The notes beneath the pieces are model-generated. The model saw only the letters and a program-made list of their open reading frames with translations, was not told where the DNA came from and made no database searches. Positions 231 to 64,000 of a stretch of 64,000 bases of DNA are shown piece by piece; within the stretch, counting starts at the first letter, position 1, and each line of letters opens with the position of its first letter. Both the position numbers and the translations under genes were made by a program. The DNA comes from Chara braunii (Eukaryota > Plantae > Charophyceae). Location: contig BFEA01000004.1 in the NCBI GenBank assembly GCA_003427395.1, positions 6,861,526-6,925,525 on the forward strand. Reading direction: 5' to 3'.

Positions 231-294
231 AAGATTAGCATGGCCCCGCCGCAAGGATGACACACATAAATCGAGAATGGTCCAATTTTTTTTT
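231..294 (+). pseudogene. U6: U6 snRNA 3' half (AAGATTAGC to 3' end) followed by T10; 5' half replaced by unrelated hairpin-rich sequence
   Basis: AAGATTAGCATGGCCCCGCCGCAAGGATGACACACATAAATCGAGAATGGTCCAATTTTTTTTTT matches the plant U6 3' half; no ACAGAG box upstream. Confidence 0.85.
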
Positions 295-330
295 GAAGTT
301 TCATTCGAACTCAGGTTTGTACTACAACAA

Positions 331-1070
331 TTAACCACCACTCCCCCCGTCGACCTAAATAGCACAGGTTCAAGAGGGCTACCGGTAGCACATTAGGGAG
401 ACAAAAATTGAGAATGCATCGAATTGGCGCTGCGATTTATCTCGTAGCGTAAATGATCTTTTCTATTCTTATTAATATATATTTTTTTAAAAAACGCAAC
501 CAAATCTACTGACCCTCAAATTTGTAGATTTGTTGACACATTCTTTTAATCGTGAAAAATCATTGAAGTTGAGGTACTTTTTTCGTTGACCCACACGTGG
601 TAGAGCGACACAAATGGAAAATGAGATAAATTGGCGCGACATTTATTTCATGATCTAACTGATTTTTATTTTTTTTTCCTGGCAAAAACACAACCAAATT
701 CACAAGTCCTGCAAATTTAAGATTTTATGAATCATTTTTCCAGCGCAAAAAAAACGTAGAAGTTGGGGTACGTTTCCCTGTGGCCTTCACATGGTAGAGT
801 GGCAAAAAATGGGCAATATTAGGAATCTACACGACATTTATTTCACGGTCCAATTGTTTCTATTTATTTATTTTCTGATTTTTTATGTGAGAGATCAAAA
901 TCTAATTTACAAGATCTCAATATTTCATATTTTTTTGTTAATTCTTATTAGCGTGAAAAATCACCAAAGTTGGCGCTTGAAAATTGCGGAATTGGGCTCC
1001 CACGCACCTGCTAGTCGCCACCCCCCCTAAGAACCCGGTCTGTAAGGCCATGAAGGCCGAATTTAGGATG
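331..1070. mobile_element. AT-rich non-autonomous DNA-transposon-like repeat with ~190 bp internal subrepeats
   Basis: Inverted copy at ~11010-11556 (AAAGTTGGCGCTTGAAATTGCGG vs CCGCAATTTTCAAGCGCCAACTTT) and partial direct copy at ~13900-14170; begins TTAACC. Confidence 0.55.
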
Positions 1071-1148
1071 GCGAGGGAAGTGGTGGTTTAATGGGTGCAC
1101 CCTCGTGAGGCATGGAAACTGAAACAACCATTGGTCTAATGCCAACGG

Positions 1149-1205
<57 letters not shown>

Positions 1206-1207
1206 AA

Positions 1208-1275
<68 letters not shown>

Positions 1276-60135: not shown

Positions 60136-60536
60136 CTGAAAACAAACATACAGGAGCATAAAAAAAAAAAAAAAAAAAAAAAACACACGTAAGGCATACG
60201 CCGGACCATAAATACTTTCTGTAATACTAAAAGAAAAAGAAAAAAAGGACGTGTCAGGTGGTCAGGGCCATCAAATGATACTTTTTCCCGTTAAAAAAGA
60301 CAAATCAAAAAGGCCCCATCACGCATCCTTACATCCAGACACGTGTCCGAATATTTCACATTTCACATTGACACATGTCCGAATATTTCACATTTTTGAC
60401 ACTGCGCCTCGCTCCCACTACACAGCGCACTAAACGTATACGGACTTGTTTAGAAGTCCAATACATTCAAAATGTTCCATCGGTCCGTATGTATCTGGTT
60501 TTCACCTTCCAGTCCACACACTTCGCGAGTGTTGAC

Positions 60537-60645
60537 TACCGTCTTCCCCCGAACACAGCGCACCCTGATTTTGGATGTATCTGGCCGGAAATATAGCTTG
60601 TATACATTCATTTTCAGGGTGCGTTATGTTCGGGGGAAGACGGTA
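60537..60645. mobile_element. Tc1/mariner(pogo)-like MITE with TA TSD (relative of 57672-57780)
   Basis: TA-CCGTCTTCCCCCGAACACAGCGCACCCTGA ... TCAGGGTGCGTTATGTTCGGGGGAAGACGG-TA; same 105 bp length. Confidence 0.85.
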
Positions 60646-60741
60646 GTGGAGCGAGGCCCATTGATTCATTATTAGAGTATTTTATACATTGTCAATATGC
60701 ATCTCTTCCCACGGGCTTCTTCGTCAGAAGATAGCCGTAGC

Positions 60742-60895
60742 TTTTTCTTTTTCTTGTTTTTCTTTTTTTAAATCTGTACTATATTCTTCACTCAAATTCT
60801 TTCATCTTTCACAACCTACCTACCACTACTCCTAAGGCTATACAGGGGACCCCTGCAAGCATAGCGATCTACCTCTCTCAGAGAAGGGAGGTTAC
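60742..60895 (-). mobile_element. Retroposon 3' tail shared with the family B SINE
   Basis: Reverse complement CCCCTGTATAGCCTTAGGAGTAGTGGTAGGTAGGT...GAAGAATATAG plus A-rich tail matches 41080-41240. Confidence 0.7.
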
Positions 60896-63545
60896 CTTCT
60901 CGGGGGAGGAAGGTTTCGGTGCGTGGCCTGACCTTTATTCTTTCTTGTTGGGTAATTGGGTGGTGAGGACGGGCGGGCGGGAAGGAAGGGAGTGGGGGGG
61001 GCCGGGCGTGAAGGGGAGAATACCGCACTGCGCCTTCAGCATCAGGGATTTCTATTCTCCATGCCCCCACTGAAGCTGAGAATTTGCCCCTCGTTGCTAG
61101 TGGTATTGTCCTCCATGCCCCCTTTTTATTGCCCTAGTAGCGAATTCAAAATCGAAAGGACGCGAATTGAACTTCTTGGCCTTCAGCCGTGATTCAGTGG
61201 AGCGAATTGAAAATCGAAAACTAAGAACATACATCAGTGCGATGTCACACATATCCTTTCACGGCGGGGGGCAAGCAGTCCCGTCACACCCTTGGGCGCT
61301 CTTAGTTTTCACTCGGTGCACCCCTTCCAATCGTCAAAGAAAAGGTTTTTCGTCGAAGAAAAGAAAAGGTTTTTCGTCGAAGAAAGAAAGGTCTTCACTG
61401 GTGTTTCCCGTGATGCAAAGCTGTGCCCTCAAGGTTTCGTTTCCCGTTTGAGCGCTGATTCCCCCCAAGGGTTACGGGCAAGGGCTATCATCCCATCAAA
61501 ATAGCCACTATGATCATGCATGGGAAGCACGAGCCTCGCCGTAATAACAGTCACACGTTCGTGCTATCATCCAATCAACATAGCTCTGCCCCTAATACTC
61601 TACATGTCTCCTTCGCTCCCCTACAACGCTGTACAATCAACATAGCTCTCCACAGGAGTCTGCCCCTAATACTCTACATGTCTCCTTACGTGGCGCATAC
61701 TCTGCATGTCACAGCGACCAAGGGACTGCAATGGACAACGCTGTACAATCCCGTCGTAACTGCGGTACACATCCTGACTCCCACGAACCCCTTCTGCCTG
61801 ATGCTCCGTTGCTCCACTCGCACTAATATTAGTCACTATTGGTCCGAATCATCATCATGTTTGCGTCCACTTCCATAAAAACTTAGTATAGGAACACAGA
61901 TGCAGGCGGACGAAGAATACAAGAACCCGTAGTCCTGTCCGTAATAGCTGGTAGTGAGAAGGCATCCCCTAAGAAAGACGGAGGAAGAAAGAGCCTCGAA
62001 GAGGGCCATGCAGAGGGAGAGGCAGAGAGGCAGAGAGGCAGAGAGGCAGAGAGGCAGAGAGGCAGAGAGGCAGAGGGAGAGAGGGAGAGAGGGAGAGAGG
62101 GAGAGAGGGAGAGAGGGAGAGAGGGAGAGAGGGAGAGAGAGAAAGTAAGAGAGGGAGGGAGGGCGGGAGAGGGAAAGAGGGAAAGATTGAGAGCAAAAGA
62201 TAGAAATGAACAGGTCAAGAGAGTTCAAGATCAGGAGCAGGAGGGGAGGGGAGAGAGAAGACGGAGATAGAGAGGGAAATGTGGAGAACGAGACAGAAGG
62301 ATGGGAAAAAGACAAAGGGAGAGCAGGGAGGCAGCGAAAGGCAGAAACGAGGGGGAGCAAGAGAGACTTGGGTAAGAAAGATTGAGGAGGGGTAACACAA
62401 CCACGACATGCAAGACAGGAAGAGACAGAGAGAGAGGGAGAGATGGAAGACTATAAATGAAAGAGCGTGCAAATGAAATCAACACGTGCAGTTAGCGGAT
62501 TCGTCTATTGATCAAGGAATCATCCATTCCAACCTAAGACCTTACAAATTTGAGAACCGTTGGTTCATATAGGACAGATACATCGATAGGTAGATGCATA
62601 CATTTTTCCCTCTATATGGGCAAACTGCTCAAGACTCATACGCACCTATTTAGCTGGCGAGCTCATCGGTCCAAAATAGGACACCACGGCACACAAACTG
62701 GAAAAAGACATGAGAGGTAGGTAATGATCTGATCGGTGCACAAACACATACCATCTCATCATCATCAGATGAAGCGCCTTCATTTCTGACAAAAGAAAGG
62801 ATTGTCTGAAATCAAGGAACCTAAACACCCACTTCGTTGACCCTTAGGGCGTCCTCACACTACGACTTTTCCACTATTGCATTCTCACTACAGATAACAA
62901 TCTGTCCGTCCGCACCGATCCAAGGATCGAACACGCGACCTCCACGTTAAAAGGTAAACACTCAACCAAACGGCTAAGTGGACTGGGGTGAAAGTTAAGC
63001 CCCAAGATGAGTACTTAACCCCACCCCAGCACGGGTACTCGTTTTTCCCCGCGACCCGGTGTACCCAGTCACACACGCGCACCCAACCAGGGTGTGTAGA
63101 CGCAGCCACCATACAATGTACGACCTCACTGCTGGTTGCTACGCAGGTAAGAATTGCCGTCATACTCGTCCGAATATGGCCGTAATGGCAATCAGACACA
63201 TTTCGGAAAGTCCTAGTTTGAGCATTCCCTTACTAGGGTGCTCAGATACACGCGAGGGCCGCCGTTACATGAAGAAGAACCATTGAGCCAATGAACAGTC
63301 CGATCGACGGTGACAATCAAGTCTGCTTTTTTGCTTCTTTTGTTTCCTCGCACGCTGGGTTATCTTTAGAGAGAGAGAGAAGGGGACTTAGTGTATCAAG
63401 GGCGCATACAGCTTTCGTTCGAAATCAGATTGAGAGTGCTCTAGATATTTCATACAGCCAAACAAGCATCAAGAGCATACGGCTTTACCTGAGACTGACC
63501 GTACAGATTGAGAGTGCTCTCGATATTTTTTTATTTTTATTTGTT

Positions 63546-63641
63546 TTTGGACCATTTCTCGATTTATGCGTGTCATCTTTGCGCAGGGGCCATGCTAATC
63601 TACTCTGTATCGTTCCAATTTTAACGTATGTCCCGAAGGAC
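63546..63641 (-). pseudogene. U6: Full-length U6 snRNA retrocopy with A-rich tail and 13 bp TSD
   Basis: Reverse complement GTCCTTCGGGACATACGTTAAAATTGGAACGATACAGAGTAGATTAGCATGGCCCCTGCGCAAAGATGACACGCATAAATCGAGAAATGGTCCAAA; TGCTCTCGATATT at 63515-63527 and 63642-63654; ACAGAGA box mutated. Confidence 0.92.
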
Positions 63642-64000
63642 TGCTCTCGATATTACAAAAAATGACGAGGAAGAGATGAAAGACACGATAGATGACGATA
63701 GCATAATTCCCGTTCCACGACGGTACAGATTGAGCATAGGCGCAAATTCCCGTTCCGCGACTGAATTCCCCCGCCCATATGCTCAAAATGGACAATAGTA
63801 CTCAGATTCAACTTACCGTCAAGGACAGTCTGGACCGCCGCGAACCGTTTATAAAACAGTTCTGCGGACCGATAGACCACGACAAAGCGCTCAGATTCCA
63901 GGGCGGGCAATACATCATCTACCACGACTTGGGATAGTGGAATGACCTCACCGGCGATACGCAGAGAACAGAAAGGGTTCTCTCTCTCTCTCTCTCTCTC

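Follow-up and report, generated by a model that had tools for sequence, protein, structure and literature searches.

Promoter-less U6 small nuclear RNA retrocopies in the Chara braunii genome, probably made in trans by an L1-like LINE

A stretch of 64,000 nt of the Chara braunii genome (GCA_003427395.1, BFEA01000004.1:6,861,526-6,925,525, forward strand; the window) holds nine sequences derived from U6 small nuclear RNA (snRNA). We consider it likely that they are processed pseudogenes of U6 that lack a promoter and were produced in trans, over a long period, by an L1-like long interspersed nuclear element (LINE). Target-site duplications (TSDs) that start with A, A-rich tails, 3' truncations, unrelated flanks, and a wide range of divergence carry this conclusion. 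They agree with an earlier reading of the same DNA (the original prediction), which had the copies retroposed by LINE-type target-primed reverse transcription.

The window was searched with the Rfam U6 model RF00026 at its gathering threshold (44 bits), and a permissive E-value scan and a local nhmmer profile were run in addition. Eight matches of 45.6 to 97.6 bits lie above the threshold (Table 1), and they recover all eight places at which U6 had been predicted. The permissive scans of the window added only a ninth, decayed copy at 10055, which the original prediction had missed. The Rfam alignments span model positions 1-105, and homology begins at U6 +1. No U1, U2, U4, U5, 7SL, or 5S match was found in the window by the permissive Rfam scan, and no tRNA was found there by ARAGORN or Rfam. 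Comparison of the window with itself identified the U6 body (~95 nt) as the only sequence common to the copies, with the exception of one pair. Flanks shared by most copies, which would have spoken against retroposition, are therefore not the pattern seen. In the exceptional pair, 30514-30755 and 30750-31006 form a 251-bp tandem duplication (90.7% identity over 258 bp by self-blast), and the duplicated unit contains U6 together with 125 bp of upstream flank. The copies at 30640 and 30891 are thus one insertion duplicated in tandem, and the nine copies represent eight insertion events. No assembly gap touches any U6 copy, flank, or TSD. The gap closest to a copy (46219-46293), 216 bp upstream of 46509, is bracketed by an 89-bp direct repeat that is 100% identical (46130-46218 and 46294-46382); it is probably an unmerged assembly overlap and not missing sequence.

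Table 1. U6-derived sequences and the LINE remnant in the window. Spans include TSDs or duplicated flanks where these were assigned; L004 is a locus on another scaffold. RT, reverse transcriptase; ORF, open reading frame.
Feature	Span	Strand	RF00026 match	Support	Divergence from consensus
Atypical U6-derived unit	182..297	+	182-292	Rfam 45.6 bits	~30%
U6 copy, heavily decayed, 3'-truncated	10055..10160	+	10055-10160 (permissive)	Rfam 39.8 bits, E = 1.8e-6 (below gathering); nhmmer E = 5.7e-16	~30%
Decayed L1-like RT remnant	17084..17806	-		tblastn with L004 RT ORF: 31.6% identity, 269 aa, E = 7e-23	
U6 retrocopy, 3'-truncated	22061..22200	+	22090-22193	Rfam 81.7 bits; exact 18-bp TSD	
U6 retrocopy, best preserved, full length	29759..29890	-	29773-29876	Rfam 97.6 bits	~3%
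U6 insertion doubled in tandem	30514..31006	+	30640-30740, 30891-30991	Self-blast 90.7%	11-12%
U6 retrocopy, older, full length	43048..43184	+	43061-43161	Rfam 62.9 bits	~17%
U6 copy	46509..46608	+	46509-46608	Rfam 74.4 bits	11-12%
U6 retrocopy, full length minus U tail	63515..63654	-	63541-63641	Rfam 88.5 bits	~5%

TSDs were detected in four of the eight events, with 18/18, 16/17, 13/13, and 12/14 matching positions. The upstream repeat lies at the 5' side of U6 and the downstream repeat lies past the tail. As a control, 2,874 random 100-bp pseudo-elements were drawn within the window; a repeat score of at least 13 occurred in 1.6% of them, and the probability of at least three such scores among nine copies is P = 3e-4. 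Read on the U6 strand, each of the four TSDs opens with AA or AAAA, as expected where a T-ended primer strand pairs with an A-rich RNA end. A-rich tails follow two full-length copies (63541 and 43061) and two that are truncated inside U6 (22090, with an A run, and 10055), and in a third class of 3' end, found at 29773, the U-tail leads into the TSD. The upstream sequence element (USE) TCCCACATCG, with 1 mismatch permitted, was absent upstream of every U6 copy, and no TATA was found at -30 in their flanks. These results reproduce the predicted TSDs (18, 17, and 13 bp plus one decayed, with A-rich starts), the A tails predicted on three copies, to which 10055 adds another, and the predicted lack of USE and TATA.

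The individual copies differ in how much of this organization they retain. At 22090, the first TSD (22061-22078; AAAGAATTCACGAACCCC) is followed by an 11-nt C-rich filler (22079-22089) and then by the U6 body, which stops at ...GCATAAA near 22172. An A run of 16 (22170-22185) extends from within the U6 end into the beginning of the second TSD (22183-22200). The 29773 copy ends in ...CCAAATT, with two U-tail residues followed directly by the A-start TSD (AAAAGGAGGCTGG[T/C]GTC; 29874-29890 and 29759-29775). The 63541 copy has an A-rich tail of ~18 nt after the U6 body. Its TSD (AATATCGAGAGCA) occupies 63642-63654 and 63515-63527, and TTTTTTGT comes before it in the target. The 43061 copy has an A-rich tail of ~14 nt and a decayed 14-bp TSD. 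The 10055 copy is truncated at ...GGATGACA, after which an A-rich tail follows, and no TSD remains. The tandem pair is without an A tail and has C-rich junctions; its possible C-rich 12-bp TSD (11/12) is not significant, as its score of 9 was reached by ~6% of the random controls. Neither a TSD nor an A tail was detectable at the 46509 copy. C-rich nucleotides abut the U6 5' end in two independent insertions, at 22079-22089 (CCCCCCCCTCT) and at 30626-30639/30877-30890 (CTCTCC[A/C]CCCT). They could be non-templated additions, the trace of a 5'-extended source transcript, or chance.

The sequence at 182-297 is an atypical U6-derived unit and not a plain retrocopy. Its 5' half is strongly diverged and has lost the ACAGAGA box, its 3' half is well kept from ~231 and ends in nine T, and it has no TSD and no A tail. 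The original prediction had listed a U6 copy at 231; its U6 origin is borne out by the RF00026 match that starts at 182, but its standing as a plain retrocopy is not. The unit adjoins a hairpin-rich stretch at the window edge (1-181; fold z = -2.3), and its right flank has a paralogue without U6 at 10996-11760(-). A tRNA-like head of a short interspersed nuclear element (SINE) within 1-181 was considered and rejected, as neither ARAGORN nor a lax Rfam scan called a tRNA. A 22-bp repeat (18/22) at 160-181 and 422-443 was also rejected as the TSD of a U6 chimera because the paralogue (11170-11760(-)) runs continuously across the supposed 3' boundary.

Divergence from the consensus extends from ~3% at 29773 to ~30% at 10055 and in the 182 unit, as had been predicted from copies that looked near-intact to heavily decayed, and this wide age range supports the claim that insertion was long-running. 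CpG-to-CpA/TpG changes recur at the same sites across different copies. TSD quality drops as U6 divergence rises, and the four events that lack a TSD are more diverged copies. At a divergence of at least 12%, two 15-bp repeats would differ at 3-4 positions, so the absence of a TSD from the older copies is not counter-evidence. When the whole window was searched, under relaxed settings, for further inserts that combine an A tail with a TSD, 14 matches were obtained, compared to 16 in reversed-sequence controls; apart from two U6 copies, all were low-complexity or tandem repeats. A pure run of 26 A (25873-25898(+)) follows a GC-rich segment in a decayed gypsy region. No TSD was found for it, and it may be the tail of another retrocopy.

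These features suggest the following mechanism. The template would be mature or 3'-shortened U6 RNA, sometimes with an A-rich tail, presumably transcribed from bona fide U6 genes rather than older retrocopies. An L1-like LINE would supply its enzyme in trans, and this enzyme would reverse-transcribe the RNA at a nicked chromosomal site by target-primed reverse transcription. Synthesis would be primed where the nicked strand, through its T-rich end, pairs with A residues of the RNA 3' end, and a 13-18-bp TSD that starts with A would result. Plant U6 promoters are located upstream of the gene. Because such a promoter lies outside the RNA, each copy would land promoter-less and decay, fastest at CpG. 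Eight separate insertions of very different ages would have accumulated in this way in old, mostly non-coding DNA, and one was later doubled by tandem duplication.

An L1-like reverse transcriptase is present in this genome. An ORF on another scaffold (L004:19733-20794(-)) carries the Pfam domain RVT_1, and its best match in the PDB is human LINE-1 ORF2p (E = 2.6e-31), ahead of R2. The 3' end of this LINE falls in an assembly gap. With this ORF as the query, tblastn located the decayed remnant in the window. These data indicate that L1-like LINEs exist in the genome and once landed in the window. That such a LINE made the U6 copies is suggested by the TSD and tail signature; what the sequence itself displays of the LINE is its reverse transcriptase. 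A Pfam search of 25 window ORFs gave one domain, the SH3 domain of a decayed gypsy integrase (26064-26774(-)), besides weak noise; the RT remnant came to light through tblastn alone. The best matches of the gypsy ORF, at 81%, 74%, and 65% identity, were found only among Chara braunii proteins.

Ten loci on ten other scaffolds of the same assembly (380,835 bp, 316,302 non-N) were scanned with Rfam as a genome sample. Gypsy gene models served as their anchors, and young DNA may be over-represented among them. The sample yielded 5 U6, 3 U2, 2 28S rRNA fragments, and 1 hammerhead ribozyme. Its density is 15.8 U6/Mb (95% confidence interval (CI) 5-37) compared to 127/Mb (CI 55-250) in the window, which is about eight-fold denser (binomial P = 3e-4) but had been selected for looking U6-rich. 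A purely local cluster had been named beforehand as a finding that would count against a genome-wide family. The window is indeed locally rich, but the density is not purely local. Hallmarks also recur outside the window: the U6 copies at L003:19746 and L005:12156 have A tails and perfect TSDs of 17 and 13 bp, respectively. Window and sample combined (445 kb) contain 14 U6, 3 U2, and no U1, U4, or U5, which agrees with the prediction that U6 is the favored snRNA substrate. For an assembly size that we take to be ~1.75 Gb, the sample density corresponds to ~9,000-65,000 copies above the Rfam threshold. In mammals, counts converted with generally quoted genome sizes give ~0.1-1 U6 per Mb. The Chara density of ~16/Mb in the sample is therefore 10-100 times the mammalian one, to the extent that those quoted sizes hold. 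The mammalian counts themselves are 253-2,849 U6-derived sequences per genome (PMC4476161), and the sample on ten other scaffolds stands well above them, as the prediction of a high copy number, sparser in mammals, had implied. Without a check of promoters and TSDs, Rfam-based annotation of the Chara genome will list thousands of U6 'genes' that are false.

Words sampled from 29300-30500 were present at 84-94% in four DNA runs from 2018 and at 7-13% in sixteen probable RNA runs. The RNA-run share is about the U6 fraction of this interval.

Several composite structures were seen at the sampled loci. At L005:31541-31832(-), matches to U2 (31641-31832) and U6 (31541-31647) are joined head-to-tail with a 7-nt overlap. 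This arrangement looks like a U2-U6 chimeric retrocopy, as template switching between snRNAs would give. At L002:47471-47655(-), ~39 T follow a U6 copy, and before it, in head-to-head orientation, lies a 5'-truncated U6 that is inverted and has an A-rich tail of its own. This inverted double structure recalls twin priming. Two internal 28S fragments lie far from rDNA (LSU_rRNA_eukarya; L005:43287-43490(+), 115 bits, and L007:35050-35177(+), 50.5 bits) and are probably retrocopies of rRNA pieces.

Some observations weigh against retroposition in trans by an L1-like LINE as the account of all copies. Four of the eight events (30640/30891, 46509, 10055, and 182) lack a significant TSD, and for two of them that also lack an A tail, context and age are what point to retroposition. 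The window contains no intact LINE and no U6/LINE chimera that would point to the partner, and no TSDs of such chimeras were detected when the search was extended 7-9 kb downstream from the copies without a TSD. The 11-nt C-rich filler of the 22090 copy, the C-rich junctions of the tandem pair, and the roughly eight-fold local excess also count against it; younger DNA at the gypsy-anchored sample loci is one possible reason for the excess.

The original prediction had described U6 as amplified like a SINE. This part of it did not hold up, since we saw no sign that copies beget copies: no promoter travels with them and no LINE-derived tail module is attached. The signal that bears most directly on a self-propagating family, in which some retrocopies or a derived variant locus would be transcribed as masters, comes from the tandem pair and the 46509 copy. 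They share three non-CpG changes (TTCG to TCCG, AAATT to AACTT, and GAACG to GAGCG) and a similar, non-A CCAA(A)CC 3' end, although no homology was found between the flanks of 30640 and 46509. The changes point, weakly, to a variant source RNA, which could derive from a variant U6 gene or a transcribed retrocopy, and a variant bona fide U6 gene accounts for them equally well. By a rough estimate, chance would give two copies, each 11-12% diverged, ~0.7 changes in common, so that three are only mildly unusual. The variant is absent from the five U6 copies on other scaffolds, in a total of fourteen copies, which is few. The high U6 density and the nine-T end of the 182 unit, which resembles an RNA polymerase III (Pol III) terminator, would also suit such a family. 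On the other side, private changes and CpG decay make up most of the departures from the consensus, and in the best-kept copies all of them are private. ARAGORN and Rfam found no tRNA-like, 7SL, or 5S head in the window or in 1-181, and neither an A/B box nor a USE element accompanies the copies. There is no shared 3' module beyond the U6 body, and the 3' ends vary from copy to copy. A self-propagating family is therefore unlikely.

We give still less credit to the idea that the TSD-less copies were carried as passengers in larger mobile elements or segmental duplications. DNA-level copying did produce the tandem pair, and the 182 unit stands at the end of a structured repeat with a right flank that recurs at 10996-11760. 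But no other two U6 copies in the window have common flanks, the paralogue of the 182 flank has no U6, and the decayed gypsy near 26 kb lacks the second U6 that a paired long terminal repeat would supply. In copies that are 11-30% diverged, a TSD of 13-18 bp should in any case have decayed too far to be recognized. A cluster of U6 genes, functional or variant, is barely credible. Two copies are near-intact (88-98 bits against RF00026), but USE and TATA are missing, the only T-run terminator belongs to the most degenerate copy, and TSDs and A tails stand where gene flanks would be. The copies also contain CpG decay, internal insertions, and truncations.

Other repeats were noted in the window. 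A tRNA-like stretch at 16650-16870(-) sits just downstream of the L1-like remnant. It has A-box-like and B-box-like motifs (TAGCTCAGTGG ... AGTTCGGATCC), and ~100 nt further on a T9 run precedes A15. Part of the stretch recurs at 17823-17904. The stretch is possibly a tRNA-derived SINE, although ARAGORN did not call it. A type III hammerhead ribozyme at 7867-7922(-) scores 41.5 bits (threshold 48.5), and a second at L010:21119-21173(-) scores 53.4 bits, above the threshold. The window hammerhead lies inside large inverted repeats (3145-4379 and 7678-6460, 85% identity) and may be retrozyme-like. Diverged inverted repeats of 75-77% identity also occur ~10 kb apart at 402-1083 and 10996-11459. 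The decayed U6 of 10055 and the hammerhead region both fall between them, and the repeats may mark the ends of a large element.

A literature search found no publication on U6 retrocopies in Chara, algae, or plants, with a mention in the supplement of the Chara genome paper being possible. SINEs headed by an snRNA are known as SINEU. SINEs with small-RNA heads (tRNA, 7SL, 5S; overview PMC7245038) resemble the Chara U6 copies in being short non-coding retroposons of Pol III/snRNA origin that are mobilized by LINE enzymes and flanked by TSDs. SINEs, however, carry their own promoter, usually have a LINE-derived 3' module, and form subfamilies, whereas the Chara copies have neither promoter nor module and give a single weak subfamily hint. 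A more speculative idea, which we regard as unlikely, is that capture of U6, and to a lesser extent of U2, by an L1-like LINE is far more efficient in Chara than in any animal examined so far, leaving at least on the order of 10^4 copies, and that part of the swarm is self-sustaining. Candidates for that part may be the variant lineage, marked by diagnostic substitutions and a non-A 3' end, and composite units with a U6 3' half and a T-run at their end. If this were true, the self-sustaining part would be the first SINE-like class built on U6.

The closest known counterparts are the mammalian U6 pseudogenes and U6/L1 chimeras (Doucet et al. 2015, PMC4476161; Moldovan et al. 2019, PMC6789731). 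The mammalian classes include poly(A) and 3'-truncated forms with TSDs and an A-start cleavage site, and the survey that described them covers vertebrates only (PMC4476161). The 3' ends of the Chara copies sort into these classes. Like their mammalian counterparts, the Chara copies start at +1 and are promoter-less, with TSDs of ~13-18 bp, an A-start cleavage site, and A-rich tails or 3' truncation. In both, the copies are dispersed among unrelated flanks, they span a wide range of ages, and U6 is favored over other snRNAs. The Chara case is unlike the mammalian one in its streptophyte alga host, its density (~16/Mb in the sample and 127/Mb in the window), the lack of a U6/LINE chimera in the window, and the C-rich junction nucleotides of two insertions. 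Mammalian U6 retrocopies serve as markers of LINE-1 activity and of the pick-up of nuclear RNA by the LINE enzyme. The same products in a streptophyte alga suggest that the trans-mobilization of U6 through L1-like elements either is ancient or has recurred across eukaryotes, and Chara offers a second, very copy-rich system in which to ask why U6, and then U2, is preferred.

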